Source: Paragordius varius (lineage: Eukaryota > Animalia > Nematomorpha). From it: DNA of 64,000 nucleotides. Of the stretch, positions 20,284 to 57,118 are shown in pieces (position 1 is the first letter of the stretch; each line of letters opens with the position of its first letter). The stretch spans positions 3,472,001 through 3,536,000 of the forward strand of contig OZ176050.1 in assembly GCA_964247055.1 (NCBI GenBank), read 5' to 3'. The notes beneath the pieces are model-generated. The model was not told the DNA's origin. It saw only the letters and a list, made by a program, of their open reading frames with translations, and did not search any database. The translations under genes and the position numbers were made by a program.

Positions 20284-23200
20284 ATGATTGAAAATTGTAA
20301 TGTCATACCACCATCTTTAATAAAACACGAACGAAATCAAAGCACCTCAAAAATGACCATTTCAGTTTTGTCACCTCAAATAAACGCTGTACAATCTAAT
20401 GTGCCATCACCCGCCATAATTACATCTAATGGTACAAACTCAGCACCTAATGACCCTTTGATAACACTTTGGCAATTCCTATTGGAACTTTTGTTTGATG
20501 CCCGCTTCAAAGAAATCATAACTTGGACTAATATACAGGGTATATTATTTTTAAATGCTTTTTTCTAAAATTAATTATAAATTAATTTAATTAATTACGC
20601 AATATTTATATTGTATATAGGTGAATTCAAGCTTATAAATGCGGAAGAAGTGGCCAAGTTATGGGGTATGCGAAAAAATAAACGTAATATGAATTACGAT
20701 AAACTTTCAAGGGCTCTCCGCTATTATTACGATAAACACATTATTAAAAAAGTGTTGGGTAAAAAATATGTTTACAGATTCGTCAATATTCCTCCCAATC
20801 ATAGTGCATCGTTAGGGGGTCTCCTAGGTTTATCACGTTCAGACAATCAATCGTGCGGAAGTGGGTCTTTAGTACACAACAAAGAATTCGTCAATAACAA
20901 AAATTCAAACACAAATAATTTGAATAATGTCACAAAGATACCGCAATTTGCTCAAACTAATACATCATCGTACAACTCTAACCATTCAATGCCCGCGGCA
21001 AAGAAAAGGCAAAAATCTGTCATTAAGCAAGAATTTATAACATCTCCTGATTCATCCGTCGTTCTTCCTAATAGCAATAGCAGCAACGCAAAAAATTGTG
21101 ATATTTATAAATACGAAGATGAGATGACCGACAATGCATCTTTCGTACCCAAAAATGGGACTTTAAAACAACATTTGGGTATGTTAGTATATTTATATAT
21201 GTTTGAATTTTGGAATTTAGTTTAATTTTATGTTTGTTCAATTTTCGGTGGTAAGGTTTTTTAGTTGAATTATCCCCCTCAATGTAAATTCAGGATTGCA
21301 CTCTAAATAATCCTTATTAAACGTTAAATTATCTATTTATTTCCAAAGTACACATACCTATATATGCTTTTATAAATGTTTTGCGTAATAGGATAATAAA
21401 ATGGTAGAGATAAATATTCTTTATAGAGGAGGTTATCGCGTTCAGGAACGCGGAACCTATAAAATTTTGATTTTAATGAACTTCTTAGGCTTAAAAAATA
21501 ACATGGTATTAACAAACATTTTTTTACATGTGTTAGATGGAAATACAAATGGCGGAATGCGACCTCAACAGCAGAATTATTACGAACATTTTAGTATGGA
21601 AAAATTTTATCAACATTTCCATCATTGTTCAAACATGGAAACGGTCCCACCCAACACTTGTAACTCAAAACGACCACCTTATAACACGGCAAGTGATATC
21701 CTTACGAACCATTATAATGAACTTTACAATAATATCAGCGTGAAGGACAAATCTTCAACAATAAACTTTTTGGGCCATAATCCAAACCCATATATGATTC
21801 ATCCCCCGCCGTCAGAATTATCGCCCCCAGACTCAAATGAAACCATTGAGAATCATGGATCCTCATCACACATTATTTCACCTTCAATCGTTTCAAATTA
21901 TGGGAATGCCTTTAATTTTGTGTCGTCCTCTTGCAAAAAGGAAACACATAACAGCCCGAATCATACAACCACTAGGTAGGTCTTGTGGATACGGTTAATT
22001 TTAATAACATTAGGTTTTTTTAACACCTTAAAAACGAAATGCGTTTGTTTCAATTAAAAATATGTTTCACGGCGTTTTTCGGAATTTCCAGAATGTAAGA
22101 AGTAGAAAATGAGTGGAATGTATATAGGGGCAATCTTACTCATTAACACAGTAAAATGTGCAATTGTTTTACTATCATACCATTATTTTATTTTATTTTC
22201 AAAATTATTTTCTTATGCTTTGCTAAATTTTATACTGCACTATGCTGTATATAAGCTAGCTGGCAATATTTGAGAAAAAAATCTAACTATGTATATTTAC
22301 TCATACTATATTTTGATTGCAACAATTAATAGACACCGTTTGAATATGATTTGGGTTTTGTAAAATTTTATCAGTTATATTTTCTAATCGCATATTTTTC
22401 TCTAGGGTTCAACATGATCAATCATCAAGTTATAATCACCAATCTGCACCTCAAACTCAAAATAGGATGGAACAAATCGCTAATAGCAGCTCAAGTATTT
22501 CACAATCCCAGCAACAAAAGATTATGCATGATTCAAAACAACGCAATAATTTCACCTTTACTAATCATTACAATGATTACTATCAACACTTTTGTAATTT
22601 ATTGGCCGCATCTTCGCCCAAGAACCCTTCAACTTCTCTCCCTTTGGGAGGGAGTGGACCCCAATATTTACCCTATCCTATAACACCAAACGTGTTGAAC
22701 AGTAACACCAATACAAATAAATATTTTAATATGAACAATAATGATAACAACACCATCGATAATAAAGAGAATAGTGGTGGCTTCATCAATTCCCCCCAAG
22801 CTGGTAATATGTCATTCGGATCGGCGGCCAATATGTTTTCACATTTCAATTATATGCATACACCGTTACCCCCACTGACACCCTTTAATCTTAGCATGTA
22901 TTTAGCGGTTTCGCCCCTATTTTCGCCCCTTCTAATGCCAACACCTTTTATTTTCCCTCCTCCGACAACTTCGATTTCCGCCTCAAATTATTCTGTAGTG
23001 CCACCAAACAAATCTGAAACTCATATTGACGAAAACAATATTATTTCAAAGGACACATCAATAACTGACAAGAACGAAGTATCAGAAATATCAGAAACGC
23101 ATCAACAACCATGTAATGCAACCAGGGAACCTGTAATACGAAAGAGCCAAATTTCTGAACCCGAGCCTGACAGTAAACGACTCAAGATTGATAATCATAA

Positions 23201-24047
23201 AACTTTGGTTAAATCAGAAAATAATATCACGCCTCCTATCTCACAAACAATGATGAATGTTGGAATAGCCACTACCAGTACAACCATAATAAATGGCGGT
23301 TTAAACAATAGTGTAGCAAAACGGAGCATAGCAAAAGTCAATGGGATAAAACCTAAGAAAAAACCTGCCCCGTTATCCTTGAACAATAATAATACGCCCA
23401 CGCAAAATAATTTTAAAAATATGCCTCCGCTGTATTCACACTTTGCTTCCCACTTGAATAACACTTACAACAATAATTTTGGTAGTAGTAATAACAATAA
23501 TAGTGCTGCTTTTAGCCCATTCATGAATGTCTTTCCAAACACACCATTTAACAACTTTTTTTCCTCGTTAAATACGCCGTTTCCTCCCAATCTAGGCCTT
23601 AATAATGGTAATGGTAGTGCTAATTTGTTCAAGAGTGATGCCTTGCAAACACCGGTTTTAACGTTGCGATCTCCTATGCATTTTTCTCCATCGTCTGCTT
23701 CGATTGCTCCAGTGCGGACCGAGGCAGATGTTAGCAAATCCGATTCGGACAATACATTCGAGGTAGCCGGGGGAGGTGGTAACCCAATTATATGCCCACG
23801 ATCTCAAGAATCGGATAGTTTGCAAGGTGGGATGGCAGATGACTCTACTTGCTCCTCCTCAAGAGTTTTGGAACAACAAACAAACCACAAAGCGAAAAAT
23901 AGTTTGTGTCTACTTACTACGCATGGTTGCGTTGAAGAACCTGAAGCCTTAAATCTTTCCTACAAAGTTGATGGCGGAAAGCACATACTGAAAAAATCCC
24001 AAAGTGTCATAACATTAAACAAACGGAGTGTGGGAGAAATAGCTTAA
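20284..24047 (+). CDS. Elk: ETS-domain transcription factor, Elk/TCF (ELK1/3/4, lin-1) subfamily, 964 aa, 4 exons
   Basis: Exons 20284-20539, 20621-21178, 21537-21975, 22406-24047 join in frame (2895 nt). N-terminal ETS domain [53 protein letters not shown] is Elk-type. D-domain-like [11 protein letters not shown] and C-domain-like [17 protein letters not shown]. Start codon inferred; an upstream exon is possible. No vertebrate paralog can be assigned. Confidence 0.85.
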
Positions 24048-26083: not shown

Positions 26084-29000
26084 TTATGTGAAGGCACGAT
26101 TCGTGTTATTTATAGGTTGAAGTGTGAAATTTATCAGTCCAGTGTAAATACATGTCAGGTTAATAATTTGATTAGGTTGTACTTCTTGCTTGTTGCTTTT
26201 TAGACTCACAACATGTAATTGTGTAAAATAACTGCCTCCATACTAAAATTAAATGTAAAAAATGTAATAAAAAAATAACCGTAAGGTGAATGTAATCTAT
26301 ATAAATTATATATATGTATAAATAAACTTATTTATATAAAAAAGCGAATACATATATAAAATAATTACAGTAAAATTAAGGGTTCTAAGTATAGATTAAT
26401 AAAATTAAGGTGTATCTTTAAGAATAAGCATTTAGTATATAAATTAAATGACACTAATTATATGTTGCTCCATAGAAAATTATTCAAAACAAAATGTTTC
26501 CATTTATGTCCATTCTAGGTTTTACTGATTTCTTTGATAACCCTCACTAGGAACAAATTAACTGTTTAATTTAGTAAAAAGGGGGTGACCAACATAATTC
26601 GCTTTGCGGACCGTATTTTTGGATCAAAAATCCGAAATATATGGGCATTAACAAATATTTTGTTAGATTTCTTACATACGACTGTAAAAACTATTTATTT
26701 TAACAATTTTTGCTAGTTCTTCCGAAATTAAAAAAAAAGTTATTCAGGAAATTTGTTTAAGAAGATCATTTTTACCTATTATGAACAAAATTTTGTATTT
26801 AAAATTTTCGCGGGTCGCAGAAATATTTTAAACGGCCGCGTGTTGGCCACCCTGTTGTAAAAGGTTTTAATATAATACTTTTGTTAGGTTTAAACAATAT
26901 ATATGAGAAAGGCAGATTGCAAAGGATGGTGAATATCATAGCCTACAAATTAAGAGGGGTAGAATTCGAAGTTATTAATTACATCATTTCCATCATTTGA
27001 AATATTTTTAAAAAACGACTTTTACTCCTTTTCCGAAAAATATTTATAAAGTAATATTAATTAAAACCCTAATAACATACAAAACTTTATGTATAATTTT
27101 AGTCACATATTTTTTTCGGGGCATTAGGGTGTTTATATAAATAGGTTACACCTTCAATCCAACACACTAATAATTAATATTAAATATCATATTGAGATAC
27201 AGTATGCATTTTAATGTATGTTCAGTAATTATATTGCCAGTCAAATAACATAAATGGTTTATCCAATGCGTAAAATACTGACCCACGAAATTATTTCGTA
27301 GTGCACATATGAAAGAGGATTGACGTGAGAATTAACATAGGCTTTAATTTGATGGATATTTAGTAATGTTAAATTTTGAGAATATTATAGCAATTTATGT
27401 TAACATTTGTAATATTGTTGTTACGTATTTAGATGCGGAATTTTGTGGGTTTTTATCTTTGATAAATTAATAAATAGTAAAATACGTATTTTAAGATTTT
27501 TTATGTTAATTATTCCTATTAATAATAAATATTTTTCAACATGCTAAATACCTGTATTAATCAATATTGGTATTATAATTTTATATAGTTGTTATTACTA
27601 ATTAAAAAACACAGGTAAATATTTATTTGTGAAAATTTAAGTAGATTTTAGATTTTTGTCTTTTATGTTTTGCATTTTTAATTATTAATAATTTTTAAGT
27701 ATTTCAGACATTTTAATCAGGTAAAAAATGCGGTTTTTAACAAATTTAGTAAAAATTTAGTTTTTTTTGTATTTTAGGTTTTGTATTGTTAATAGTAATT
27801 AATTACTACATATTTTGGACATTATAATAAATACAGGTAAAAATTGCGGTTTTTAACAAATTTAGTAAAAAATTAGTTTTTTTTTGTTTTTAGGTTTTGC
27901 ATTTTTAATTGTAATTAATTACTACATATTTTGGACATTATAATAATACAGGTAAAAATTGCGGTTTTTATTAAATTTAGTAAAAATTTAGTTTTTTTGT
28001 TTTTATAGGTTTTGCATTGTTCATTGTAATTAATTACTACATATTTTGGACATTATAATAAATACAGGTAAAAATGCGGTTTTTAACAAATTTAGTAAAA
28101 ATTTAGTTTTTCTTTTGTTTTTTTTATTTAATATTGTTAATTGTAATTAATTACTACATATTTTGGACATTATAATAAATACAGGTAAAAATTGCGGTTT
28201 TTAACAAATTTAGTAAAAATTTAGTTTTTTTTATTTAATATTGTTAATTGTAATTAATTACTACATATTTTGGACATTATAATAAATACAGGTAAAAATT
28301 GCGGTTTTTAACAAATTTAGTAAAAATTTAGTTTTTTTTGTTTTTTAGGTTTTACATTTTTAATTGTAATTAATTACTACATATTTTGGACATTTTAATT
28401 AATAGAGGTAAAAAATGAGGTTGTTTTTATATTTAGTAAAAATCTAATTTTTTCTTGTTATTATTTGATGTTAATTGTAATTAATTACTACTTATTTGGA
28501 AAATTTAATAAATACGGTGAAAATGGCGGTTTTTAACAAATTTTAAATGTAACATTTTTTGTATTTTATATCATTGTTATTTAATTAATTACCAAATATT
28601 TTGGACATTTAAAAAACTGGTGTTAATTGCGGTTTTAATAAATTAAAATTTTAAAATTTTTATTCAACCTTGCTAATTTATTTATCACTATATATTTGAA
28701 CATTGATATATACAGGTAAAATTACTATGATTTGCGGTTTTTAAAATTTTTAAACATTATTTTGTTTTACATTGATAACTAATATAATAAATATAGTTAA
28801 CATATCTGAGCAGGTAAAAATGCATGTTACGGTTTTATGTTTGATATTTTATTTTCCAAATCAACTATTTATATTTTAACAAACACCTTATGTCACCAAA
28901 GATTGAAAATAAGATCAAGATATATAAAACATCTTTTAAAGTATTTGAGTATCGCCAAATATAAATATATTTATTTGAATTATAAATGTATATACAAAAT

Positions 29001-32000
29001 ATTCATAATATTATATTTGAAATTAATATTCTTCTTATTGATATTAATACAGGTAATTTGTTTATATAATTGATAAACGATGCAGTGTGCGTTCATGCTG
29101 ATCATATAGATGAAGAATAGTATGAGATGCAATAATTAAATGCAAATAGAAAGTTTCATCACCATCATTTTATGGGTAGATTCTATCAACTAAAATATAA
29201 GATAGTTAATATATTAGAAAATTGATACCTGGATTCTAAAAGTATTTTCAACATAAATTGGGGGCTAAAACGTTCAAAGTTTGAAAGAGAACTAAGTAAG
29301 GTTGACTTGGCTTTTTAACAACTAAATTTGCAAAAAAATATTTTCTTCATGATAAAATATTTAAAAATGATACTTTATGTTTTTTTCGTTCTACCATTCT
29401 AAACTATAAATATGAAAAGGCTTATATGATTTCACCATACCAATGACGTCAAATAGAGAATAGAAACAAATATTTATTTTCAAAAGCTTTGAATGCAACA
29501 GCACTACAAAAACTAAGCAGGTAACACTAACATTGTTTGTTTTGGTGAAGAATAGTTTTTTATATTTATAGTTTAGGATGGTAGAAGGAAAAAAACATAA
29601 AGTATCATTTTTGAATTTTTTATCATGAAGAAAATATTTTTTTGCAAATTTAGTTGTTAAAAAGCCAAGTCAACCTTACTTAGTTCTTTTTCAAACTTTG
29701 AATGTTTTAGCCCCCAATTTATGTTGAAAATACTTTTAGAATCCAGGTATCAATTTTCTAATATATTAATTATCTTATATTTTAGTTGATAGAATCCTAG
29801 AAAATGATGGTGAAGATCGTTTATCAATTATATAAACAAATTACCTGTATTAATATCAATAAGAAGAATGTTAATTTCAAACATAATATTATGAATATTT
29901 TGTATAATTATACATTTATAATTCAAATAAATTTATTTATATTTGGCGATACTCAAATACTTTAAAAGATGTTTTATATATCTTGATCTTATTTTCAATC
30001 TTTGGTGACATAAGGTGTTTGTTAAAATATAAATAGTTGATTTGGAAAATAAAATATCAAGCATAAAACCGTAACATGCATTTTTACCTGCTCAGATATG
30101 TTAACTATATTTATTATATTAGTTATCAATGTAAAACAAAATAATGTTTAAAAAATTTAAAAACCGCAAATCATAGTAATTTTACCTGTATATATCAATG
30201 TTTCACAAATATATAGTGATAAATAAATTAGCAAGGTTGAATAAAAAATTTAAAATTTTACTATATTAAAAACCGCAATTTACACCAGTTTTTAAAATGT
30301 CCAAAATATTTAGTAATTAATTAAATAACAATGATACAAAATACAAAAAATGTTACATTTGAAGTTTGTTAAAAACCGCCATTTTCACCTGTATTTATTA
30401 AAATTTCCAAATAAGTAGTAATTAATTACAATTAACAATATTAAATAAAAAAACAAGAAAAAATTAAATTTTTGCTAACAATAAAAACAACCTCATTTTT
30501 TACCTTAATTAATCAAAATGACCAAAATATGTAGTAATTAATTACAATTAAAAATGCAAAACCTAAAAACAAAAAAAACTAAATTTTTACTAAATTTGTT
30601 AAAAACCGCAATTTTTACCTGTATTTATTATAATGTCTAAAATATGTAGTAAGTAATTGAACTAAAAATGCAAAACCTAAAAACAAAAAAAACTAAATTT
30701 TTACTAAATTTGTTAAAAACCGCAATTTTTACCTGTATTTATTATAATGTCTAAAATATGTAGTAAGTAATTGAACTAAAAATGCAAAACCTAAAAACAA
30801 AAAAAACTAAATTTTTACTAAATTTGTTAAAAACCGCAATTTTTACTTGTATTTATTATAATGTCCAAAATATAGTAAGTAATTACAATTAACAATGCAA
30901 AACCTAAACATAAAAAAACTAAATTTTTACTAAATTAATTAAAAACCGCAATTTTTACCTATATTAATTAAAATGTCCAAAATATGTAGTAATTGATTAT
31001 AACTAACAATGTTACATAAAAAACAAAAAAACTAAATTTTTACTAAATTAATTAAAAACCGCAATTTTTACCTATATTTATTAAAATGTCCAAAATATGT
31101 AGTAATTGATTACACTAACAATGTTACATAAAAAAAACAAAAAAATAAATTTGACTTAATTTAATAACCGAATTTTTACCTGATTAAAATGTCTGAAATA
31201 CTTAAAAATTATTAACAATTAAAAATGCAAAACATAAAAGACAAAAATCTAAAATCTACTTAAATTTTCACAAATAAATATTTACCTGTGTTTTTTTAAT
31301 TAGTAATAACAACTATATAATATTATAATACCAATATTAATTAATACAGGTATTTAGCATGTTGAAAAATATTTATTATTAATAGGAAAAATTAACATAA
31401 AAAATCTTAAAATACGTATTTTACTATTTATTAATTTATCAAAGATAAAAACCCACAAAATTCCGCATCTAAATACGTAACAACAATATTACAAATGTTA
31501 ACATAAATTGCTATAATATTCTCAAAATAACATTACAAAATATCCATCAAATTAAAGCCTATGTTAATTCTCACGTCAATCCTCTTTCATATGTGCACTA
31601 CGAAATAATTTCGTGGGTCAGTATTTTACGCATTGGATAAACCATTTATGTTATTTGACTGGCAATATAATTACTGAACATACATTAAAATGCATACTGT
31701 AAGTTGACTAGATCCATGATAATTGAAGCTAAAAAGATATTCTACCCTTTTAGTCCCACATTCATGGAGTGGAATGTTTAACGTAATATAGCTCTGTAAG
31801 AGTTTAACATTTTGTGAAGATTCATAAACAGTACAGTTTTTATCGTAATTTCCAGCAATAATTTTTCCATCAAAAAATTCCTGCTTAGAAGTAGTCATAA
31901 GAACGACATTCATCGAATCATCGCTGCAAAAATGCCTGACTAATATTAAAAATATGAATCATTCCAAAAAATATTATGATGGTAAGAACATAAGATTAAA

Positions 32001-35000
32001 ATATTACTTTGGTTATTTTCAAAAGTTTTTGTAACTTTCTAAAATGAGATAAATTAAATAAAATCATCAAACTTTTGGTATCACATAATCACATTCAATA
32101 CGTTGATCTATGATTTGTTTAGGAAAATTTAAATGCAATATGTTGGAAAATTGGATGAGGGAATCGTTTAGCACCTAAGATATAGATTTAAAATTTATCA
32201 ACCGTTTTAAAAAGTATTTTTAGAAAAGTATTAAAATTAACTTTTTCATGTGTATCGCATTGATTTAATGGAATAGGTAGGTATAAATCTGAATTGAAAT
32301 AAATTTCGCCTCGATACAAAATACAAGAGTTTGAAGATCCAACATTTATTTCCAAAAAAATTGGTGATGGTTTAACAGATAAATATTTTAGCGTAACTTC
32401 CATTTCATTTTTTAGACAGGAAAGTTTTGCGTCATAATCTAAAACAATAAATAAAAAAACTGAGAATTGATCAAAAGTGTTTTTGATTTGAATTTATTTA
32501 TTTTTTAAAACAAATATCATTGAAATGTGATTTTAAAATAATATGGTCTAAAAAATAACCCTTGAACATGTTATTTTAACCACCTGAAAATTGTGTTCAT
32601 ATACCAAATTAAAAAAAAATTTAGTTTTTTCAGTAATTGTTAATTGAGAAACATGCTATTTTTAAAAATTTGGGAATGACAATCTATATAAATAAATAAA
32701 TAAACAAATCAAAATTTTTAAAATGGCTAACTAAACATACAATTTATATGCTTGGCAAAAAAGCTTTGATATTTATAAAGTCAAGCGCCTATACATACAT
32801 CAAATTTTACATTATAGGAATTTCAAAGTGTGAAAATTTGACTAAAATATCGGTTTTGTGTAATCTTTACTTATACAGTGGCTCACTATCTTTTTTAAAT
32901 TAAAACATAAGATTAACCCAATCGTACCTTAGGATGACATATGAAAAAGTTTGGATAAAATTAACAAAATATTTAATACCGTAACGAGCACTATATAGAC
33001 CATAGCTATAATTTAAGTAATTAAAAGTTTAAAATTTACATGGTAAACCCTTTTAGCCATTTAAAATACAGATATTATTGTCTCCATAAAAGTGCTCGTT
33101 ACTGTATATGTTATTGGGCTGTATAATTAATAAAAAGTAAATTTTAAAAAGATAATTAATTAAAATAATTATTTCATTAACTATGGTACTTAACATTTGT
33201 CATATTTTTACAAATGTTTTGTGAGCAAGTGTATAGCAACTAAGAAATTTAAACAAAATTATAAAATTAATGCAATATTTTAAAAATTGTTTTCTTTCAA
33301 AAAGCTGATTAATTAAAACAAAATTATATAAATTTTGGAATATTATTTATTACAAGCCAAGTTTTAGCAATTTCGATACATCAAAAAATAATAAGCAGTT
33401 AAGAGTCTCTTTTTTACTTTTTTATTAAAGAGTAAGGACTTAAATTATATCCGGACATATAAAGGCTTTAACACTCGCCTGTCCAGGGCTGACTGTGATG
33501 ATGGAAAAATGCGTAGTTTCGGGATTTGAACTCTGGCACGCTGTGTAAGGTTCCGGGGCCTTATTTACTATAACATCAAGCCTCCGATTCATCTAAAAAT
33601 ATATAAGGCATCTTGAAAAACAGCTGACCGCTTAAAACTAATTAGTTTTTAGGTCTCATTTTCCTTATATCCACACTATCCCCGGAAAGCCGCTGATATT
33701 AAATAATTCAAAAATTAAAAAACTCCATTTCAGAATTAAAATTTGGCACACTGCTTTTTATTTTAAAATCCCATATAAAATATAAGCAGTGTCCAGTTAA
33801 AAATATTAATTATGGAAAAAACTTAATATTTACCTGGAATTCTGTCTATATCAGTATTGGATGCCTCTATCTGCCGCTTTTGACGGTAACGATATTGATT
33901 ATTATAGTGCCCATTTCTATTATATTTGTTGTATAGATGAGGATGAGATGGACCCGTGAAATCATAGATAAAATCTTGAAAATATTTTTTGTTTTCCCAA
34001 GATTTAGATTCACATTTAGCCGTGTGAATTGTACGCCCAATTACTAAGGGTAAATCCAAAAAGGTATAATATTCAATCTCGAAGTCCAGTATATAGGTCC
34101 CATCTTTGATCTATTTATGGTGAACGAATTAAAACTAAATATTTCTCATACCTAATTTATGCTACATCATACACGTTTAATAAATGTGCATTTAAAAGCC
34201 AACACTCCAAACATATATGCCCCCTGTTCACACCACAGTGAACAGGAAAATCTATATATTTATAAAAATGGAAAATGCTGGCTTTGTGATCTGTTTCCGG
34301 AAAACCGGTAGACCCATTCAAATCCAAATGTCGAAAAAATATAATCATTAATAAATGCCCCGACAACAGCTTCGCTCTTTTTTTGAATTAGGCCCCCAGT
34401 TCGGGCTTACCCCGTGTAAAAACGGTTTTTTTTGAAAACAGAAGTCCACAAAATCGTGTCTTTGTGACAATTTTCCGGAGATGTTGGACCATTCAATTTC
34501 AAATATGATTTTAGTTTACTTATTTTCGATTGCGCCGAACATAGTCGGCTCGCTTTTTTAATTTAGGCCCCCTTTTTACCCGCTCCCCCCGTAAAATGTC
34601 TTTTTTTTCAAAAAACAAAGTCCACAAAAATAATTTTTTAAACCTATTTTTCGCCCAAGATATGTCTGTTAAAAGGCAAAAATTTTAGTCAAGCGTTTCT
34701 TTGATGATAGCTGCTGGGTAAGGAGATACCCGCTAAAAACTGTCCCGTCATATCGAAATAGCGTGCCTTTGGGGCTAAATTTCAAAAAACCTATCAGGCC
34801 ATATGAGTTTAGTCCGTTCTTAAAATATTACCAGTAAAAAAATTTAAGTCGAGCGGATTTTTTAAATTAGCGGTTAAATAGGCCCTTTACGCCCTAAAAA
34901 ATGCGCCAACATAAAATAATTTTTTAATTTAAGGCCATTTTTCCGAAAACAAATGAGAGCATATGAAATCAATCATGATTCCAGGTTTTCTCCGTGGCAA

Positions 35001-36026
35001 AAATTTTAATCAAGCGCTTTTTTTGTATCTGCCTCTGGGTAGGGAGCTACCCGCCTACAACTGCGCCACCATATTAAAATATCGTTGTTTAGGAGTTAAT
35101 TTTCAGAAAACCTAGGCATAATGGCCTGAAATATTTAATACCCCCTGAAAAACAAATATAGTATAGGGGTTATATCAATGAGTCGATAAGAAAAGTTTTA
35201 CGCCCTGAAAAATTCGCCGCCATAGAACAATTTTTTGGTTTTAAAACAATATATCCAAGAACTTATAGGAACATATGGACATTATAATTGCAGATATTCC
35301 CCATATAAAGACAAAAATTTTGCCCGACGCTTTTTTATACCTGTCTCTGGGTAAGAAGCTACCCGCCAAAAACTGTGCCATTATTAAGAAATTGCGTTGT
35401 TTTGGAACTAATTTAAAACTTATGCCATATGAGCTTAATTAAAGTCGAAATATTACCCGTAACTAGGTAAAAATTAGGACCAGGCGTTTTTTTATTAGGC
35501 GTTAATTTGGGGGCTTTATGCCCTAAAAATACGCCATCACATAACGATTATTTAGTGTTGAGATATTTTTTCGAAATCCCATGAGACGATGGTCTCAAAG
35601 ATGATTCCAAATATTTTCCCTATAATGGCAAAAAATTTAACTTAACGCTTTTCCATATAGGCCTATGGGTAGGGATCTACCAGTTTAAAATTGAGACGGC
35701 ATGCAAAAATGGTGTGGCTTTGGAGCTAATTTTCAAAAAGCTTAAGAAGCCATACGAGTTCAATAAAAGCTTTAAATATTACCCATAAAAAGGTAAAAAT
35801 TATAGTATAGCGGTTTTTCCGTTAGCCGTCGATTTGGGGCTTTTACATTAGTAAACAATATATTAGTATGAATGCACCGTTTTAAAAATCCTATGAGATC
35901 TTAGCTACTAAATAATGTTTCGAAATAATCCACATATAAAAATCATTTTATTGTCCCTTTTTTCAAATACCCCCCCCCCCCCCCCCCCCCAGAAGTCCGA
36001 AGCTCACGTGATTTACGCTAGTAATG

Positions 36027-36064
<38 letters not shown>

Positions 36065-39000
36065 GTATCAAAAAAAATAATTAGGTTAGACTTGAGGCAT
36101 GATTTTAATTTTTTAATGGCCTGAAAAAATAATACTTTTATATTGCATTCCGGAATTTTGATATCAATTGAAACTATATTTGAGGAATTACCCATCCATC
36201 TGCAAGCATTTTTACTATCTTTTATTTTCCCATAAAACTTTTGTGGAAAACTTAACTTTAAATGCATAGTATTGGTGGACTTTGAACAATGAACATTTAT
36301 CTATATATAACATATGTTGAGGGAGAATACATTTAACAACATTCAATTCGATATATAATTTAATATATAGATAACCGATGGTGCCTTAATATCTGAAGGG
36401 ATCCCAGCTTCAATGTTTATAGACAGTGGTGTCACCATTTGTGTCATATCCTTTTTGTCATCTTTTTTCTTGACATAATCTTTATCGTTTTCGCGATTGC
36501 TCGATTCGTGACCTGATGTATTGATATATTCTTTCATAGATAGGGGCAGAAGTTCTTCGGCAAATGTCTTATCGTTTTTAGAAAATTTTTCATTAACATT
36601 ATTTTTTATATGCTTGATTTCTTCATCAACTGTTTGGTGTATATTAGGCTCATTTTCTTTTACAGTTTCTTTCATCAAAATGCCGTAATTGGCAAAATCA
36701 GTGTTTTTTTGGGAATCATACATTAGGTTTTGGGTTGCCTCGTGTTTTGCTTTTGATGCATATGAGGCCTGATTCAAATTTTGCGTATAATGGCCGTTTT
36801 TAATTTTTTCATCTTTTATCTTTGACAAAGTATCAACTACTTTTGACGGTAAATTAGATTTTATGAACCATTTCTTATAATTTTCACCAGATTCTTGTTC
36901 TTTGTGATGTTCAGGAATATTATTATACCTACTGCTTTCCAATTTTATATTATCTTTCAACAACAAACTTTTGTCCCATTGCGTCGTGCCAAGTTTCGTA
37001 ATGTTATTTGATTTTTCACCAAACGCATGTCTGAGAGGAATATTATTTTTATTTTGATTGTTAGTGTATCTGCATAAGAGATTGTGTTTTACAATGAGAT
37101 TCTCTGAGTTAATATGTTGAGATTTTGTAGGATATTCCGCATACAAAGCGGTCCGATATATTTTCGGTGTCTAAGGTAAATAAGTTTTAATAAATAATTC
37201 AATCATAACATATAAAAAATGTAATCAATATGCACATGTTGCGCCAAATTTCCGTTCATTATAATTTTTTATTTTTAGTCTTTAATATCACACCGATTCC
37301 GTAATCCAAAATATTGAGGTGACATTAATGAAAAACCCGAAAAACGATTTTAAGCAGCCAGCTGTAAAACTTTTTTGATGAATACACATGGGCTGAGACA
37401 TATGTTTCTATATCACTAATTTTTGTAAAAATTTATTTACGGAGGCTTTAAGTTTAAATCTGATTAAATCAGTTTTGTATAAAAAAGCTTAGTTAACAAT
37501 GCCTCTTTTGGTTTTTGTAACAAAAATATACCTCGTTCGGTACCTGAGATGGAGGAAGTAAAATAGCTAAGGTATTTATTATCAAAAAACATATTTTTTT
37601 ATATTTATATACCACATTTTTACTTTTCAAATATTATATTTATAAAGCACATTTTTACGTTTCAAATAATAAAATTTCTAAATTTTAATTAAAAAGCTTA
37701 TATATTTTCCTCAGGTACTAAACGGGCCGATCTTATGTATTTTTACAAAAGGTTAAAACCCCCCATATTTAAAATGAGATTTGTAAAGTTACCACATTAA
37801 AACAAATTCAAACGAAATTGTATGATACTGTATGTATATTCCGAAAAATCTAATTTTCAAAGAAAGTTATTCTAATTATTACTTCTTCCCACGTACAATC
37901 TTTCAACGGTATATTTAAGGTTGTTAGGTTTCCAAAAAAATTACGAAAAATTTTGGATGTAAAGTCACATTCGGGGTTATCTCGTTTAGCTATAGAGTTG
38001 CTAAATTTATCTTCAACTCTTTTATTATTTTCTCTAGTGGGAGATGACAATAAGTTAGATGTAGTATAAAGTCGAATAGGAAATCCAGTTCGATATTTTT
38101 CGTTTGCCAGAGTATTATTGATGCTCAAATAAACTTTCATATGTTTTGGATTGCATTTTAATTTAACTGTGGTGCAAAAATATAATATGTGGATATTTTT
38201 AATTACGTGATAGAAATATAATTACAAAAGGACTTACGTTGAGCTGGAATGTAGTCCTAAAAATTAAAAAAAAATCAATAAAAACTTTTCCAACAGTTGT
38301 AATTAATTTTAATTTTGTAATGGTAAACAACGGATTGGTTATGTTTTTGTAATAACAGTTGTTAAAATCCGTAATATTGCATAAAATATTTTTTAGGAAA
38401 TTTAGAGAATATTATGACATACCGATTGTATCATTTCTTGAATCAATGTTCGGTTTAAAGCATCCGTTTTGAAAGGTTTTCTGATATAAAGATTTAATAA
38501 TAATTACAACTTGCATAATATTTTTTGTTTAAACACTACTGGGTTGGCATGCTCAAACGACTTCGGCTTAATGAACAATTCATTGCTGAAAAAGTATTGA
38601 TTCTATGATAAAAAAGATTACGCATTTTTTAAATTAAAATTTGGTCAAAATAAGTCAATTTCAATTTTCCTAAAAAATGGCAATTCTACTTGTGAAGTTC
38701 CACAACTATTGATCGGAATATTCAAAAAACCCGTCCATTCATCCATTATGTTAGAAAAACAATTAGGATCAGAACCCTGATCTTTGGTAAAGATTGTTCC
38801 AGAGAATTTTTCATTAAATTTAACATGAACCTTGACGCCTAAGGATCCGCATTCAACGTTAACTAAATTAAAAAAACATTTAGTATGGAGACAGGAAATA
38901 AAGAGCAAAATAATTATAATTTTACTTGTAGAATTGGAAAAAGATAATTTCTTCGATGGTTGTTTGGTGACATCGTCTAGTTTTTTTACCTAAAATTTAT

Positions 39001-42000
39001 ATATACCATTTACGATCTAAATTCACCCTTCAACAATTTAACATCACCCTAAAAATAAATTATGTGTTTTCGGACTAAATATAATTCATCATTAATATGA
39101 AACATATTATTATAACATAGTTAATTATTTTTTCAGCATTATTTTAATTTTAAACAAAATTTTATTTTTTAAAAATATAAATATGGCTATTTTAATCTTA
39201 AAAAATATATATATTATTTTAAAGTGAATTTGAATTGTTCGAGGGTTAATATCAAATGTGAATGGTGTAATATTGGGTTGTTAATATGTATATTGCTTAC
39301 AAAATAGAAAGGAATGAAAAATTTTTAAAATAAAAAAAAATACCTCTTCGATTTGTCTGTTAGTCACTCTCCAATGATCTGGATTTTTCCAAACAACATC
39401 ATTGAAGGCATTTAATGGTGCCTTTGTAGTTATGCTAAAAGCCTTAGAAGTTATTACGCGCTTGGTGTTAGTAGGTGAAGTTGTTGTAACAAATTTTGTA
39501 TCAGTTTCTTTAGTTGTTACATGTTTTAAGGGTGCATCGTGAGAAAGGGGATTGTTCTTGACTAAAGTCAAAGATACATTATATTCAGGATTTTTACATT
39601 CATACGTTTTCAATGCACTTTTTGCATCATTCAAATTTTCGATATCCCCAGTACCATAGGTAAGATTTAATTGATTGATATATAAGTTCCGTACCTAAAA
39701 TATACAATAGATGATGATAAATTGTAAAATATTTGAAAATAGGGCTTGATTATTAAATCGAAGCATTTAAGGGCATGAAATAATATATATAGTCCAGAGT
39801 CGCATAAAAATAATACTGAAACATCTCTAAAACTCTGCATAATAAAACCAAATTATTGGCATCCTAAAAAAGCTTAATTAATGTATGTTAAAAACATTAT
39901 AGAAAATAAAAAAGGCGACAGTACTGGATAATTTTCAAGTTGTTATTATATTATATAATTCGCGAATCTTGCGTTATATATATTTTAGCCTCCTAAAATA
40001 ACCCATTATTTAGTAGTTTTTTCTTAATAAGGGCAGAATTGTAATATTTATAAACTTTACTTTACTAAATTTATAAGATTACTAGCGTAAATCTTGTGCT
40101 GCTAAGCAGCCCGAGGAAGTCGTTCGGACTTCTTGGGGGGTGTAGAAGGAGGCGCTATTTGAAAAAGGGTTCAACAAAATTGTGATCCATATATGTGGAT
40201 TATTTCGAAACATTATTTAATTATGATCTCATAGAATTTTTAAAACTGTGCACTTATAGTATTATATTGTTTACTTGTGTGAAAGCCCCAAATTGACGGC
40301 CAACGGAATAAACCGCTATACTAAAATTTTTACCTTTTTATGAGTATTATTTAAAGTCTTTATTGAACTCGGATGGCTTAAGTTTTTTGATTAGATCCAA
40401 AACCATGCCATTTTTTATGGCATCTCAGTTTTAAACGGGTAGACACTTACCCATAGACCTATATGGAAAAAGCGCTGAGTTAAATTTTTTGCCTTTACAG
40501 AGCAGCAAATATTTGGAATCATCTTTGATACCATCGTCTTTTGGGTTATTCGATAAAAATACCTTAACACTAAATTACCGTTATATGATGGCGTATTTAA
40601 CATAAAGGCCTCAAATTAACGGCTAAAAAAACGCTTGACCTTAATTACCTAATTACGGGTAATATTTCAAGCTTTTAATGAGCTCATATGGCTTCATATT
40701 CTGTAGATTAGCTCCAAAACAACGCAAATATCTAAATAATGGCGCAGTTTTGGCGGGTAGCTCCTTACACAGAGGCATGTAAAAAAAGCGTCAGGCAAAA
40801 TTTTTGCCTTTATATGGGGAATATCTGTTATCATGGATCCATGTTTTCATATAAATTCTTGGAAATATTACTTCAAAACTAAAAAATTGTTTGATGGCGG
40901 CGCATTTTTCAGGGCGTATAACTTTACTTAGGGACTCATTGAAATAACCCCCTATACTACAATATTTGTTTTTTAAGGGGTAGTAAATATTTTAGGCCCT
41001 TATTAAACTCACGTAGTATTATAGGTTTTCTGACATTTGGCTCCAAAGGCATGCTGTATCAATTTGGAGACGCAGTAGGCGGGTAGCCCCCTAACCAGGG
41101 CGACACAAAAAAACGCCTGATTAAAATTTTTGCTTTGATTTGGGCAATACCTGGAATCATGATTGATTCCATATGCTCTCATTGGAAGAGTTGCCTCAAA
41201 ACTTAAATATCATTCTATTGTGGCGCATTTTTCAAGGCGTAAAAGGCATAATGAACGGCTAATTTTAAAAAACGACACGAACTAAATTTTTGCCTTGTTA
41301 CGGGTATTATTTTAAGCATTAATTGAACTCATATGGCATGAAAGGTTTCTTGAAATTAAACCCCAGCAAGCTATTTCGATATAACGGGGGATTTTTATCG
41401 GGTATCTCCTTACCCAGCAAAATATAAAAGAAACTCACTACTAATTTTTGCCTGTTAACAGGGAATACCTGGAACCTTCATCAAATTTTTAAGGTTTCAT
41501 ACCTTGGGCGAAAAATAGATTCAAAAAATTATTTTTTTTTTTAAAAAAATGGCATTTTACGGGGGAGCGGGTAAAAAGAGGGCCTAAATTAAAATAGCTA
41601 GCCGACTATGTTCGGCACAATCGAAAAAAAGTAAAAACAAATTATATTTTAAATCGAATGGTCCAACACGTTTTCCGAAAAATTGTCTCAAAGACACGAT
41701 TTTTGGGGACTTATGTTTTCAAAAAAAACCGTTTTTTACTCGGGGTGGACCCGAACTGGGATCCTAATTCAAAAAAGGGCGAAGCTATTGTCGGGGCATT
41801 AATGATTATATTTTTTCAACATTTGGATTAAAATGGGTTTACTAGTTTTCCGGAAACAGATCACAAAGCCAGCATTTTCCATTATTTTTAATATATAGAT
41901 GCAAGTTTTTTAAAGTTTTATATTGGAATATTTTATTCGACACAACCGTCAGTAAATAATTTTTTGATTTGCTCCATCATCCTTTTAGGTAGTTTGATAT

Positions 42001-45000
42001 CTAAGAGTATTCGTAATTTAATACCTATAAAAGTATTTAAGCTATTAAGCCGAATATAAAAATATGCTTTTTTAGCATTTTAGGCGCATTATACAATTTT
42101 TTTTTAAAAAAAATAAAAATTGTAAAAAAATCATATCTTTTGTCGCCATTTTTTCTATAGATTTTTTTAAATCGCTAATGCAACAGGCAAATAAGCGCTG
42201 GTCAGAAATTGTAAATAATTTAATTTAAGCTTTCAGGCTTCATTTTATTAGCAAAAACTTGATATATTTTTATTTTAATATTAGCTGATTGTCTCAATCG
42301 TGGTTTAGAGCTGTCCCATTTTGAAACTCTAGAGTTAAAAAACTGTAAATATTAGCTTTTTTTATCTAATACATGAGAACAATGGTCTTTACAAAATTGA
42401 GCTCTTGGATGTAAAACTACCCCAAACGGTATACTAGGACAAAAAAGTGAAAAGTTGATGAATTTTTAATTAAAAATTAATAGTTGTTTGAAATTATTTT
42501 TGCACTGATTCGTTATTAGGTTATGTATTATTCAAATATTAGTATAGATATTATTTTAAACAAGTGTGAAAATTAAACAACCTATATTAATATGTTTTTT
42601 CTGTGTATAATTTCATTAAAATTTGCATATGTCAACCACAAGTCCTTGACAAAAATTGGTTTTATATGACAATATAATTAATTAGTTAAAATGCCTATTC
42701 ATTATGAATAATCATACAGGCTTAAATGTGTCAAATTTTAAATTAATATTACGTGTAATTTTTTTTCAAATACATCCATATGTAAATTTTTGAATTTTTT
42801 TAATAATGTTAGTAAAAAATCCCGTATAAAGAATTTAAGAGTTACAGTTTTTCACAATTTTTCGAAATATGAAACGAAACTTTTGAGTATTTTAAAGTAA
42901 TTATTTCAAATAATCACGTCTATAAGCACGATATCCAGAACAGCTCTCATTTCTGTTGCGCCGTGCAGGAATCCGTGATGGCGCCTTTTAACCCTCCATG
43001 CAACCCCTTGCATTTCAAAATATAATCAATTCCAACCGTACTCAAAAATGGGTGTGTTTTTATGTTTTTTTGTAAACTTTTAGATACCTATTTTTTAAAA
43101 ATAAAATTTTAAAAATCCGGCGCCCCTTTAACTATGGCTCCCGGTGAACAGCTCCCTCGCGCCTTTGACAATATTATTAGCATTTAAAAAATGTTTTAGG
43201 TGCAAATATTTTAAATATGATTGTTTCAACTTAGTTTTTATCCAACAAAAAATAATATGGTAGAGTATGTAAAGCTTCGGACTCTTAAACTGTCTGTGTG
43301 GAGTTAGTTTGAACCCCGAAACTGCACAATCACTGTCAGCCCTGGGCAGGCGTGTTAAGACTTTCAGAAGTCCCGAATTTAAGTCCCTAGCCTTTAAAGG
43401 AAAAAAGATACCCTTAAGTTTGTATAGTTACACTAAATCGACCAATACTAAATATATTATATACAGTGAGACTTTTCCGAATGAAGCTTTTTATGCTTAT
43501 AAAAATGTAATTTTAGAAAAAACGCCATTTTTGCCCTTAGGTCAACTCTATATAAGGCCATGTTCTAAAAATAATTTATAGGTAATCAAATTTTGGTTGA
43601 AATTTAAAAATGCATATAAATATTTTATATTTTGTTAAAAGTTAATAATTTAATATATTCAAGTTAGTGTTAGATAAAAAGCGCGATAGATCAAACGCCA
43701 TAGAAGCAAAATAATGAGAACTACTAAATTGCGTAACACCTGTTTAATTTTTTTTAAACGATTGATAAAAAATCAAAAGAGGCGTTCATGGAGTTTGCAG
43801 TTTGGAACAAAAAAAATATATAAATTTTTAAAGGGTTTACTTAATATTTTTTTCAGACGATATTAATAATAAACATGATAAATCTTTTTTATGATAAAGA
43901 CCATGAAAATAGGTACATATTCAAAATATTTTTCTATTTCTAGTCTTATATGTTACTAAGCACATGTGACATTTAAAAAAAATTAGCCGTATTTTCTAAT
44001 GCCTTAAGTTTCATCCAAATCATCGACTATATCAAATAATTTTTATAGTATAAAATGGACAAAATCCAACATATTTTAATATTATCAAAATTTTACTGTT
44101 TGTGTGGAGCAAGAATCAAACGGTACTGCAAAAGAAAACGAATTGACTGCATGAAATGCGAAAAAGCATTCTCCTACAGCAACTGATCCCGAATAAAGAT
44201 TTCTGAAAGTTACTGAAACGTCGATTCGCTGTTTTTGACATTCAAATCCTATGCTACTTTCTGCATGGTATTCTAAAATTATTTTGAAAAAATATTTTTA
44301 AATATAAATCATGCCTAGTCCGTTAGATATTGGGGTAAATAACGACCCCAGGCGTCGAAATATAAAAATATATACCTTCCACATAACTTGATATTTCTAA
44401 TTTGATAAACCTGAGGGCAAAAATTAAACAATATGACATGTCAACATTAGCTTAATTTAAATATTATACGAATTAAACAATTTTCCGGCCGATATTAATG
44501 TTAAACGGGAAAAAATTTACTCTTATTAAAGTTGGAATCTAAAAAATAAGATATTTTGCTAAAATGTTTTAAAATAAAAATGGCGTCCGTCCAGACAGTT
44601 TAATATAAAGTTCGCAAACTATGGCTCTTATTTTTAAAATATAAGCATAAATAAAATGGCGCTCTTTTTAATGGTTTATTATATCAAATTGGGCGGGGTG
44701 TTCCCATATAACCCAATTTGATCAAGTTAAATATAATAAATTAATTTATATAGAGTCAGCTTAACTGTATTAGTTAAACATGTGCAATTCAATCGAATAA
44801 AATTTTTTGTAACTTTCCACAACTTCTTGATGTTTTATATTGGTATCATACTACTTAAAAATTTGATATATTATGCTTAAAAACTGAATAAATTTATACC
44901 TAATAAATAAATAATAGTTAAAAGTAGCGATTGAATCATTAACCGGAACCGATTTCTACTTTAAGTAAACGGCTTTGGAATTTTATTAAAGAAAAATATT

Positions 45001-52399: not shown

Positions 52400-54072
52400 G
52401 TATATCATCGATTCCATATGTTCATATAATTTCTTGAAAATTTGCTTCAAAACTAAATTGTTCTATCGGCGCATATTTCATGGCAAACTTTACTTAGCAA
52501 CCCAATGAATATATGCTAAAACATATTTTTAAGGGGTAATAAATATTTTAGGCCCTTATTGAACTCACATAGTTTCATAGGTTGTTTAAAATTTTGCTCC
52601 AAAGGCATGCTGCATCGATATGGTGATGCAGTTTTATGCGGGTAGCTCCTTAACCAGGGGCGAAACAAAAAAGCGCTCGATTAAAATTTTGGCCTTAATT
52701 CGGGTAATATCTGGAATCATCATTGACTCCATAACTTCGCGGGATTTTTATAAAATTGCCTCAAAACCAAAAGTCATTATATGGTGGCGCATTTTTTGGG
52801 CAAGGGTCTAATTAAGGGGTAATTTGATAAAACCGCACTGCATAAGTTTTGTCTTTTTACGGGTATTTCAAGTACTTATTAAACTCATAACTGATAAGTT
52901 TACTATAATTTGCCTCTAAAGTCACGCTGTATCAATATGGTGGCGCGGTTGTAGGGGGTAGACCAGAAGCCAATATAAAAAAGGCGTTCGATAAAATATA
53001 TTTGCCTTAATAGAGGAATACCTGGAATCATCATTCATTTCATATGTTCTTAATTGTTTTTGGAAAAATGTCAAAACTAAATAATAGTTCAATGATAGCG
53101 CATTTTTTAGGGCGCAAAGTGCCTAAACGGTTAATTTAAAACAACCGCTCGACTTAAATTTTTGCTTTGTTACGGGTAATTTAAGAAATTATTGAACTAA
53201 TATGGCCTGATGAGTTTTATGAAAATTAACTCCTAAAAAACGCAATTTCGATATGGTGGCGCAGTTTTGGGCGGGCAGCTTCTTACCCAAAGGCTGATAC
53301 AAAAAAGCGCTTGATAAAATATTTTGCCATTTTACGGAAAATACCTGGAAATATAATCCATATGCTCTCATTATTTTTGAAAAAATTGCCTAAAAATTAA
53401 AAAATTATTCTATGGTGGCGCATATTTTAGAGCGTGAAGGGCCTAATCAACGGCTAATTTTAAAAAATCGCACGATCTAAATTTTTGTCTTGTTATGAGT
53501 AATATTTTAAGCAGCTATTGTCATATGGCCTGATAGGTTTTCTGAAATTAAGCCCCAAAGGCACGCTATTTCGATATGACGGGGCAGTTTTTAGCTAGAA
53601 TCTTCTTACCCAGCAGCCAATATAAAAAACGCACAACTAAAATTTTTGCCTTTTAACAGGGAATATCTGGAATCCTCATTAGATTTTTACGGTCTCATAC
53701 CATGGGCAAAAAATAGATTCAAAAAATTATTTTTGTTGACTTAATTTTTTTTATATAATGGCATTTTACGGGGGAGCGGGTAAAAAGAGGGCCTAAATTA
53801 AAAAAGCGAGCCGACTATGTTCGGCGCAATCGATAATAATCATATTAATCGAATGGTCCAACACGTTTTCGGGAAAATTGTCTCAAAGACACGATTTTTG
53901 TGGACTTGTGTTTTAAAAAAACCGTTTTTCACACGGGGGAGCCCGAACTGGGGACCTAATTCAAAAAAAGGCGAAGCTATTGTCGAGGCATTTATTAATG
54001 ATTATATTTTTTTGATTATTGGATTTAAATGGGTCTACCGGTTTTCCGGAAACAGTTTTATAAATATATAGA
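52400..54072 (-). mobile_element. Non-autonomous Helitron, copy 3 (3'-truncated)
   Basis: Same A|TCTATATATT 5' end at 54072 and colinear body with extra ~315-bp units; no CTAG end found. Confidence 0.8.
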
Positions 54073-56366: not shown

Positions 56367-57118
56367 TATGTTAATGAAGGTAAATAAGTACATTTTCAAT
56401 TTTTAATATATGAGTTATATAATCAAATATTTAGATGGCCCTATACAGTATGAAAATTTTATGCTGGCCTATTTACATTGTTGGCCACAATCGGCATCAC
56501 CGTAGTAAGGGTAAAAACAGCTAAATTTTAAAATAAATCAATTTTCCCTTTTTTCTATTTAATTATGGATTTATAACACATTAATATATTACCAAGGACA
56601 AACAATAATGTCATAGCTCAGCATAAATAAACATACTGTAAAGGCAAAATTCAAGGATATTTTTTTAACGTATACATCTTTAATTCGATTATTATTGATT
56701 GCTAATCTATATTAAAAGATTTGAGGGAAAAAAATTGAATATTCCTCAAGTTGATATTTATTTAATACTATTATTATTAATTAGGTGTATTATCACATCT
56801 GTTTCGCCCGTATATGGTCTATTTTTACTAAAATTGCCATCTATTTCTGATAAAAATATTATATTTATGACTTATCTGCACCCTGTTTTGTAACATGTAA
56901 ATCATAAAAAATGTATATTAAACCTTTTTAATTGCTATTGGCTCAATTATGCATTTGAATCGATCTTGCAAAATGTTGTTCAAATAAATAAATTATGAAT
57001 CAAGAGGAGTATAGATAGTTAGTCTACCGAGTTGCATGTTGGATATATTAGTGTATCCTAATTAGCAGCAGAGACTAAGAGAAACCAAATTTTGTGACAG
57101 TGTTTACCACGTGTCATA

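Follow-up and report, generated by a model that had tools for sequence, protein, structure and literature searches.

An inverted pair of non-autonomous Helitrons in two homologous introns of a ZP-N repeat gene from Paragordius varius

Two non-autonomous Helitrons of one family lie in opposite directions in introns 3 and 12 of a minus-strand gene of the nematomorph Paragordius varius, at 34251-36021 (copy 1, plus strand) and 41899-40082 (copy 2, minus strand) of the window, the 64,000-nucleotide stretch of contig OZ176050.1 analysed here. The pair probably reflects two independent, old insertions of the dominant Helitron family of the genome, which came to be inverted with respect to each other by chance, are not under selection and give rise to RNA by-products at most. 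The locus is a real but ordinary candidate for repeat-driven back-splicing and exon skipping, its layout being common and the mechanism already known.

A single blastn alignment of 1840 columns joins 34251-36001 to 41899-40123 at 78.9% identity (E = 0), and repeat finding in the window recovered at least 25 collinear inverted blocks between the two arms. On this alignment the similarity of the arms is homology, not chance. Each copy, read on its own strand, starts with TCTATATATT after a flanking A and ends in ACGCTAG before a flanking T, displaying the 5′ TC (in the TCTATATATT start) and 3′ CTRR (in the CTAG end) of Helitrons. In copies 1 and 2 and in others, the base before the 5′ end is A and that after the 3′ end is T, placing the insertions between A and T, often within (TA)n tracts; the same termini, hairpins and A/T target recur in 10 other genomic copies, and neither terminal inverted repeats nor a duplicated flank (target-site duplication) was seen at copies 1 and 2 or at other genomic copies. 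Two subterminal 3′ hairpins, with stems of 6 and 5 bp and ∼12 nt ahead of CTAG, characterize the family and are both intact in copy 2 (1,818 nt), which lies in intron 3 and is sense in the pre-mRNA. Copy 1 (1,771 nt), located in intron 12 and antisense in the pre-mRNA, has its 3′ hairpins partly deleted, and contains a run of 21 C at 35970-35990 and internal tandem units of ∼320 nt (direct repeats D1 and D2). Neither copy holds a long ORF. The inverted pair that a sequence-only reading of this DNA had described at 34251-41899 is thus borne out by the blastn alignment and by canonical Helitron ends. Two further family members are present on the minus strand, copy 3 at 52400-54072, oriented like copy 2 and located 8 kb or more upstream of the candidate ATG exon, and copy 4 at 59527-60806, with a truncated 3′ end.

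The host gene is modelled with six tandem ZP-N modules and with GT-AG at all splice sites; all exon coordinates below are on the minus strand. A candidate first coding exon (44376-44439) would encode a short hydrophobic, signal-peptide-like start (KD(9) maximum 2.44); it is open from its ATG, has in-frame stops upstream and ends in a phase-1 GT donor that fits exon 3. Exon 3 (44097-44272), bounded by AG and GT, starts in phase 1, ends in phase 0 and carries the first half of module 1, in which three invariant Cys align with those of the other modules. The second half of this module, including the aligned fourth Cys, is followed by a Thr/Ser-rich linker in exon 4 (39344-39694, 351 nt). A putative linker exon 5 (38926-38989, 64 nt), recognized by GT-AG sites and frame continuity, precedes the two halves of module 2 in exon 6 (38690-38862, 173 nt) and exon 7 (38511-38602, 92 nt). 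A 30-nt intron then leads to two more predicted linker exons, exon 8 (38423-38480, 58 nt) and the 19-nt micro-exon 9 (38238-38256); the linker including exon 9 is 57 residues long compared with 60 in the ortholog from Gordionus sp. (XP_065315438.1, P0003), and the two lengths thus agree. Module 3 is split between exon 10 (37883-38166, 284 nt) and exon 11 (36376-37170, 795 nt), the latter continuing into a long Lys/Asn-rich linker. Exon 12 (36136-36300, 165 nt) encodes the first half of module 4, and exon 13 (33834-34110), which starts in phase 0, the second half and a linker. The rest of the gene (26117-32438), placed by sequence reading and tblastn, comprises module 5 (32438-32242 and 32174 to ∼32070), one half, the first, of module 6 (31939-31746), a last intron of 5.5 kb and the last exon (∼26242-26117). 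This last intron contains a second hairpin that is better than the Helitron pair (93% over 1.9 kb).

Collinearity with the Gordionus protein, a series of tandem four-Cys ZP-N modules, extends from exon 6 to the last exon and includes the linear 10/11, 11/12 and 12/13 junctions. Exons 6 and 10 match its residues 125-179 and 240-315, exons 11 and 12 together match residues 316-646 (E = 7e-31), exon 13 is 54% identical to residues 704-752, and the remainder yields collinear tblastn matches to residues 771-986. The two genes differ in module number, six in the window compared with five in the Gordionus model, as module 1 has no Gordionus counterpart. Domain assignment used the Pfam models PF23344 (ZP-N) and PF25057 (cuticlin N-terminal domain). 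Exon 6 scored 30.5 bits against CUT_N (cut-off 27), and the ortholog scored 54.1 bits against the full ZP-N model (cut-off 24.7) and 34.7 bits against CUT_N. There are four conserved Cys per module, three invariant in 6/6 first-half exons and one in the 5 second halves aligned. Neither the exons nor the full-length ortholog matched the ZP-C half or Pfam Zona_pellucida at E ≤ 0.1, which places the product among ZP-N repeat proteins and not among classical ZP-module proteins. Protein searches were made with single exons, which were joined only to count length, stops, Met, Cys and hydropathy. In its own genome exon 6 matched itself alone, a profile of the six first-half exons found no match among PDB sequences, and a word search of a protein collection with exon 4 was likewise negative. 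An exhaustive search with exon 11 against 1.84 billion representatives returned the Gordionus cluster only (E = 1.3e-4), and the protein collections searched contained no transcript-derived or annotated P. varius protein covering exon 4 or 11. The whole window gave no Rfam match at the gathering threshold. If the gene model were wrong, or the gene a decaying pseudogene, the exon arithmetic that follows would be meaningless. Exons 5, 7, 8 and 9 (64, 92, 58 and 19 nt) and the 30-nt intron were drawn from sequence only, two models of the looped exons differ in total by one codon, and module 1 is missing from the Gordionus model. Nevertheless, all nine exons from 4 to 12 are open and bounded by GT-AG sites, the Cys pattern is kept in 6/6 modules and the gene is collinear, from exon 6 to the last, with a RefSeq protein from another genus, which makes such an error very improbable.

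The Helitrons are close to the exons that they enclose. Copy 2 ends 388 nt before the exon 4 AG acceptor (40082 to 39694) and copy 1 lies 115 nt beyond the exon 12 GT donor (36136 to 36021), exactly the distances given by the sequence-only reading, which was also correct in assigning both boundaries to the mid-domain phase-0 intron. The four boundaries concerned, the end of exon 3 (44097), the start of exon 4 (39694), the end of exon 12 (36136) and the start of exon 13 (34110), are all in phase 0 and occupy the same place in the aligned, repeated ZP-N module. Flanking introns 3 and 12 are 4.4 and 2.0 kb long, compared with 30-712 nt for the introns between exons 4 and 12. The layout is that of repeat-driven circRNA loci, with reverse-complementary sequences in both flanking introns and canonical AG and GT at the splice sites. 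The exon 4 acceptor and exon 12 donor would be the candidate back-splice sites, and the exon 13 acceptor the candidate skip site.

In the minus-strand pre-mRNA the two arms are complementary. Alignment and folding of the two Helitrons, which had been proposed alongside the original description, give the 78.9% identity over 1840 columns reported above and a predicted duplex of −2027 kcal/mol, compared with approximately −500 kcal/mol for shuffled arms and −396 and −418 kcal/mol for the arms folded alone. The predicted inter-arm duplex comprises 1512 bp with 20 helices of at least 20 bp, six of them at least 30 bp, and the longest helix spans 46 bp, or 39 bp when only Watson-Crick pairs are counted. 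The view that divergence of the copies weakens pairing does not hold for these longest helices, as they exceed the 30-40 nt of complementarity that suffices in minigenes. Copy 3, if transcribed together with the gene, would likewise pair with copy 1 (−1501 kcal/mol). Copies 3 and 4, however, are upstream of the likely start, and only a single strong pair is apparent in this transcript. A short SINE-like repeat in intron 3 (43329-43417) is inverted relative to a copy in intron 13 (33399-33499; 73% over 101 nt, duplex −102 kcal/mol), and these two complementary repeats may form a second but weak pair around exons 4-13.

In flies and nematodes, transposon copies in inverted pairs are a classic source of endo-siRNAs. 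The paired introns might act mainly as hairpin dsRNA, processed by Dicer into small RNAs against the Helitrons or subjected to editing or degradation, leading to silencing or reduced host output rather than altered splicing. The 1.5-kb, near-continuous predicted duplex, a Dicer_dimer domain encoded in the genome and the even better hairpin in the last intron of the same gene are consistent with such a fate. The Helitron arms, however, are in different introns ∼4 kb apart, and pairing would need delayed splicing of intron 3; this explanation is unlikely. A search of the genome for an ADAR deaminase domain found no match, although the control was also without a match.

Both skipping and back-splicing would keep the reading frame, in agreement with the sequence-only reading. 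In the nine-exon model exons 4-12 total 2001 nt (667 codons), with no in-frame stop through three laps of frame 0 and ten in-frame AUGs, while stops abound in the other two frames. Length divisible by three, zero in-frame stops and an in-frame AUG are the properties of an endless ORF. The stop-free circle proposed previously, of 2004 nt and 668 codons, is upheld as open and a multiple of three; for its length the independent model gives 2001 nt. This difference of one codon does not affect the frame. Preservation of frame in both outcomes is an automatic consequence of module symmetry, as the two introns are the same phase-0 mid-module intron. Exons 4-12 exclude the candidate signal-peptide exon and, by hydropathy, contain no hydrophobic segment, and it follows that synthesis of a disulfide-bonded ZP-N product from the circle would take place in the cytosol. 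Entry of an endless ZP-N product into the secretory pathway is hardly to be expected, which argues against a useful translated product.

These features bear on the proposal that looping-out of exons 4-12 by the Helitron duplex is regulated or useful, yielding a three-module protein and/or a ∼2-kb circRNA translated round and round. In its favour are strongly complementary arms close to the splice sites, long flanking introns and two outcomes that are both in frame, with ten in-frame AUGs and zero stops. In addition, reverse-complementary matches promote both back-splicing and skipping in Caenorhabditis elegans (PMC8330042), Helitron-derived repeats act likewise in flies (PMC4617980, PMC12404201) and stop-free circles can be translated by a rolling-circle mechanism (PMC4639774). 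By contrast, the preserved frame is automatic for homologous introns of the same phase, the arms are not unusually alike, such a layout recurs often in the genome and the collections searched yielded no transcript-derived protein of the gene. Furthermore, a circle lacking the signal-peptide exon would not deliver a disulfide-dependent ZP-N concatemer to the ER, and the modules that supply the fused halves are only 13-25% identical, the folding of a chimera being unproven. Such regulated or useful looping is thus quite unlikely.

The precedents invoked by the sequence-only reading, that inverted repeats drive back-splicing and that a Helitron-derived repeat does so at Laccase2, are correct (PMC4617980, PMC8330042, PMC12404201), and flies and worms already provide examples of Helitron-derived inverted repeats that drive circRNA formation and skipping. 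The Drosophila laccase2 and PlexA circRNAs are flanked by inverted copies of the Helitron-derived DNAREP1_DM (Kramer et al. 2015, PMC4617980). Laccase2 resembles the window locus in its inverted non-autonomous Helitron-type repeats, near splice sites and within long introns on both sides, with base-pairing as the proposed trigger. At laccase2, however, a single exon circularises, and the circle was demonstrated on Northern blots, by its response to RNase R and through compensatory mutagenesis (PMC4617980), whereas here nine exons (2.0 kb) would be looped out. Complementarity extends over 1.8 kb at 79% in the window, compared with 106 nt at 75% plus 272 nt at 69% at laccase2. The zip-2 gene, from the same nematode/nematomorph lineage, is similar in that one intronic pairing is proposed to yield a circle as well as a linear mRNA produced by skipping. 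In zip-2 this pairing is a conserved, CRISPR-tested match of 13 nt, whereas that of the window locus is predicted between a pair of 1.8-kb transposons. CircRNAs arising from Alu pairs in primates, and the enrichment of Helitrons among complementary matches flanking fly neuronal circRNAs (PMC12404201), offer a further parallel, as abundant interspersed repeats provide chance inverted matches and competition between copies decides which exons are looped; unlike in those cases, only a single strong pair is apparent in the window transcript. The circles translated by Abe et al. (2015, PMC4639774) share with exons 4-12 a length that is a multiple of three, in-frame AUGs and no in-frame stop, but were engineered, while the product here would be a secretory, disulfide-bonded domain repeat without a signal peptide.

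The origin of the pair is illuminated by the rest of the genome, in which the family of copies 1 and 2 is the dominant non-autonomous Helitron and the most abundant mobile element. An exact 15-mer of the 3′ end occurs at least 616 times (303 forward, 313 reverse; a control pattern gave 0), and a first-look genome search returned 2436 candidates for the family. Helitron_like_N matched 16 times in the genome, mostly to stop-containing relics. Among the matches listed for contig 1, neighbouring ends within 10 kb form five inverted and three direct pairs; close inverted pairs are frequent, and chance would often give such a layout in this genome. Local inverted duplication was rejected as the origin of the pair, as the homology of the arms breaks off precisely at the Helitron ends and closer relatives of each arm exist elsewhere. 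Copy 1 is 86% and 83% identical to copies on other contigs (86% being its best genomic relative) compared with 79% to copy 2. Selection for arm similarity is rejected as well, the identity of the pair (78.9%) equalling the family median (79.3%).

The favoured explanation, chance inversion of two unselected insertions, would begin with Helitrons landing in opposite orientation in homologous phase-0 mid-domain introns of the gene for a conserved, secreted six-module ZP-N protein. The arms would pair only if intron 3 were still unspliced when copy 1 is transcribed ∼4 kb later. The linear six-module mRNA would then remain the main product, accompanied at most by by-products, assumed to be of low abundance, in the form of a ∼2.0-kb circle of exons 4-12 and/or an mRNA in which exon 3 is joined to exon 13. 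For many exons, flanking repeats do not lead to circularisation (PMC4617980). Against a low level of these products, the locus unites the two best-known promoters of back-splicing, strong complementarity and long flanking introns. As these features are combined with much shorter internal introns, the circle or the skipped form could exceed trace levels. That both old insertions have persisted fits with neutrality as well as with use, and there is no sign that the arrangement is under selection or has a function.

It is most improbable that the chance pair has been co-opted to change ZP-N module number in this secreted matrix protein through the in-frame three-module skip, perhaps with an abundant 2-kb circRNA of endless frame. 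Were this true, it would be the first description in Nematomorpha, a phylum for which no paper on circRNAs was found, of a circRNA or isoform switch driven by repeats. If the circle or the three-module isoform is real, the locus would provide a clean natural case in which transposons alter how many repeats a modular extracellular protein contains. It is in any event a well-defined candidate with exact junction coordinates, 36136>39694 for the back-splice and 44097>34110 for the skip, and illustrates that in genes built of duplicated, symmetrically split modules, frame-preserving sets of looped-out exons arise automatically.

The minus-strand gene of six ZP-N modules, which hosts two inverted Helitrons, was modelled independently of the sequence-only reading. 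Exon 3 (44272-44097) ends in phase 0, the phase in which exon 13 (34110-33834) begins. Between them, exons 4 (39694-39344), 5 (38989-38926), 6 (38862-38690), 7 (38602-38511), 8 (38480-38423), 9 (38256-38238, 19 nt), 10 (38166-37883), 11 (37170-36376) and 12 (36300-36136) are bounded by AG/GT sites, and the introns separating exons 4-12 span 30-712 nt; the model requires a 30-nt GT-AG intron (38481-38510) and the exon 9 micro-exon, both predicted from the sequence. At 44439-44376 there is a candidate ATG exon, whose peptide would begin with a short hydrophobic segment. The coding sequence is made up of six homologous modules, each displaying four conserved cysteines, a phase-0 intron after the third and a phase-1 intron before the module. 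Single exons were the queries in protein searches, exons being joined solely to count length, stops and hydropathy. Searched by itself, exon 6 matches the Pfam cuticlin N-terminal domain, which is of ZP-N type, above its cut-off.

An exhaustive protein search with exon 11 identified a single cluster, belonging to Gordionus sp. m RMFG-2023, a horsehair worm, and no P. varius protein among representatives of 15 billion proteins; a word search with exon 4 returned no match in the protein collection. The RefSeq protein of this cluster, the Gordionus ortholog XP_065315438.1 (988 aa), matches ZP-N at 54.1 bits and CUT_N at 34.7 bits and has no ZP-C match. Exons 6, 10, 11, 12 and 13 are collinear with it, as are modules 5 and 6 and a last exon (~26242-26117). 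This order backs the linear junctions 10/11, 11/12 and 12/13, and demonstrates that the gene is conserved in a nematomorph relative. A faulty gene model is considered very improbable. With its five ZP-N modules, the ortholog lacks an equivalent of module 1 (exons 3-4), which reflects either a real difference in module number between the genera or a 5'-truncated annotation.

The last intron of the gene wholly contains a 4.5-kb foldback element (27198-31701) with CAGT... ends adjoining TA. The two arms (27198-29081 and 29816-31701) share 93% identity over 1.9 kb, one ending ~45 nt past the donor at 31746, and the element shares 88% identity with a palindromic element at 1-1691. Elsewhere in this AT-rich DNA (GC 21-36%), reverse-transcriptase-type ORFs from non-LTR retrotransposon fragments (4152-5769 and 9815-12736, minus strand) sit amid plus-strand exons resembling a DEAD-box helicase gene, and an ETS-domain gene occupies ~20240-24044 (plus strand). 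Rfam reported no family at the gathering threshold across the whole 64-kb window, 57095-57188 included.

Four Helitron copies of one family lie in the window itself: copy 1 (34251-36021, plus strand, intron 12), recognized by its termini, with the 3' hairpins in part deleted; copy 2 (41899-40082, minus strand, intron 3), recognized by its termini and its blastn match to copy 1; and copies 3 (~54072-52400) and 4 (~60806-59527), both on the minus strand. The element was defined by reading the window sequence and by comparison with ten other genomic copies. Each copy begins with TCTATATATT directly after an A, while the 3' end comprises two short GC-rich hairpins, ~12 nt and a final CTAG before a T; (TA)n tracts are frequent hosts. 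These termini and hairpins, together with the absence of terminal inverted repeats and target duplication, identify the element as a Helitron. The copies contain no long ORF and are therefore non-autonomous; Helitron_like_N relics are present at other sites of the genome. Close to its 3' end, copy 1 carries a C21 run (35970-35990), which would be G21 in the pre-mRNA, ~150 nt past the exon-12 donor, and C runs occur at the corresponding site in other family copies.

The distances from the end of copy 2 to the exon-4 acceptor (388 nt) and from the exon-12 donor to the end of copy 1 (115 nt) are as the sequence-only reading had claimed. Its circle of exons 4-12 is indeed a stop-free multiple of three, but measures 2001 nt in our model rather than 2004, a difference of one codon. 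Over three laps frame 0, which has ten Met codons, contains no stop, compared with 150 and 225 in the other frames. Skipping (44097>34110) and back-splicing (36136>39694) would both stay in frame, each uniting the first half of a ZP-N domain with a second half. Save for that codon the earlier observation is confirmed: the inverted pair around in-frame ZP-N exons is real and precisely described.

A repeat search of the window revealed many densely spaced inverted blocks, in collinear order, that link 34250-35991 with 40134-41900, and blastn aligned copies 1 and 2 in a single alignment of 1840 columns (78.9% identity, E = 0). In the minus-strand pre-mRNA copy 1 is antisense and copy 2 sense. RNAduplex predicts an inter-arm duplex of 1512 pairs in 155 helices at -2027 kcal/mol, against ~-500 kcal/mol for shuffled arms and -396 and -418 kcal/mol for the self-folded arms. 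Twenty predicted helices reach at least 20 bp and six at least 30 bp; the longest has 46 bp, or 39 bp counting Watson-Crick pairs only. In fly laccase2, arms of 75% identity over 106 nt suffice, and in minigenes ~40 nt of arm is enough (PMC4617980). The predicted duplex exceeds these lengths, and divergence, which had been thought to weaken pairing, should therefore be no serious handicap to pairing potential. Internal tandem units of ~160/320 nt in both copies (34675-35744; 40159-41479) would also let the arms pair in shifted registers (off-diagonal matches 65-72%). That the paired arms act as a source of hairpin RNA seems unlikely. Introns of the gene share just one further inverted match, a weak SINE-like pair (33399-33499 in intron 13 and 43329-43417 in intron 3; 73% identity over 101 nt) with a tRNA-like GGTTCAAA(T/C)CC box, a second complementary pair bracketing exons 4-13. 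Copies 3 and 4 are predicted to pair with copy 1 too, yet lie at least 8 kb upstream of the likely gene start.

The mechanism is established: back-splicing as well as skipping is promoted by complementary matches (PMC8330042), among which, in flies, no repeat is more enriched than Helitrons (PMC12404201), and circles lacking a stop can undergo rolling-circle translation (PMC4639774). That looping out exons 4-12 gives a functional circle or isoform is unlikely. The circle would leave out the candidate exon for the signal peptide, and no hydrophobic stretch occurs in its frame (maximum KD19 0.59), so a rolling-circle product of the disulfide-dependent ZP-N modules would be cytosolic. The frame, moreover, is kept automatically because all six mid-module introns are in phase 0. 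Each arm has closer relatives elsewhere than the other arm, and arm-arm identity (78.9%) is level with the median of the family (79.3%), so that nothing points to pairing having been preserved; the arms are two independent old insertions.

The family is the main Helitron of this genome (110.5-Mb assembly), with 2436 candidates in a first-look search and 616 exact 15-mer 3' ends, divided evenly over the two strands (control pattern, 0). In the list of ends for one contig, five of the neighbouring pairs lying within 10 kb were inverted and three direct; such inverted pairs are common in this genome. The arms would meet only if intron 3 stayed unspliced during ~4 kb more transcription, and many repeat-flanked exons fail to circularise (PMC4617980). 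Most likely, the insertions are neutral and would yield at most minor by-products. A literature search found no paper naming both Nematomorpha and circRNA. The inverted pair makes the locus a good candidate for repeat-driven back-splicing or skipping, a further case of a known kind.
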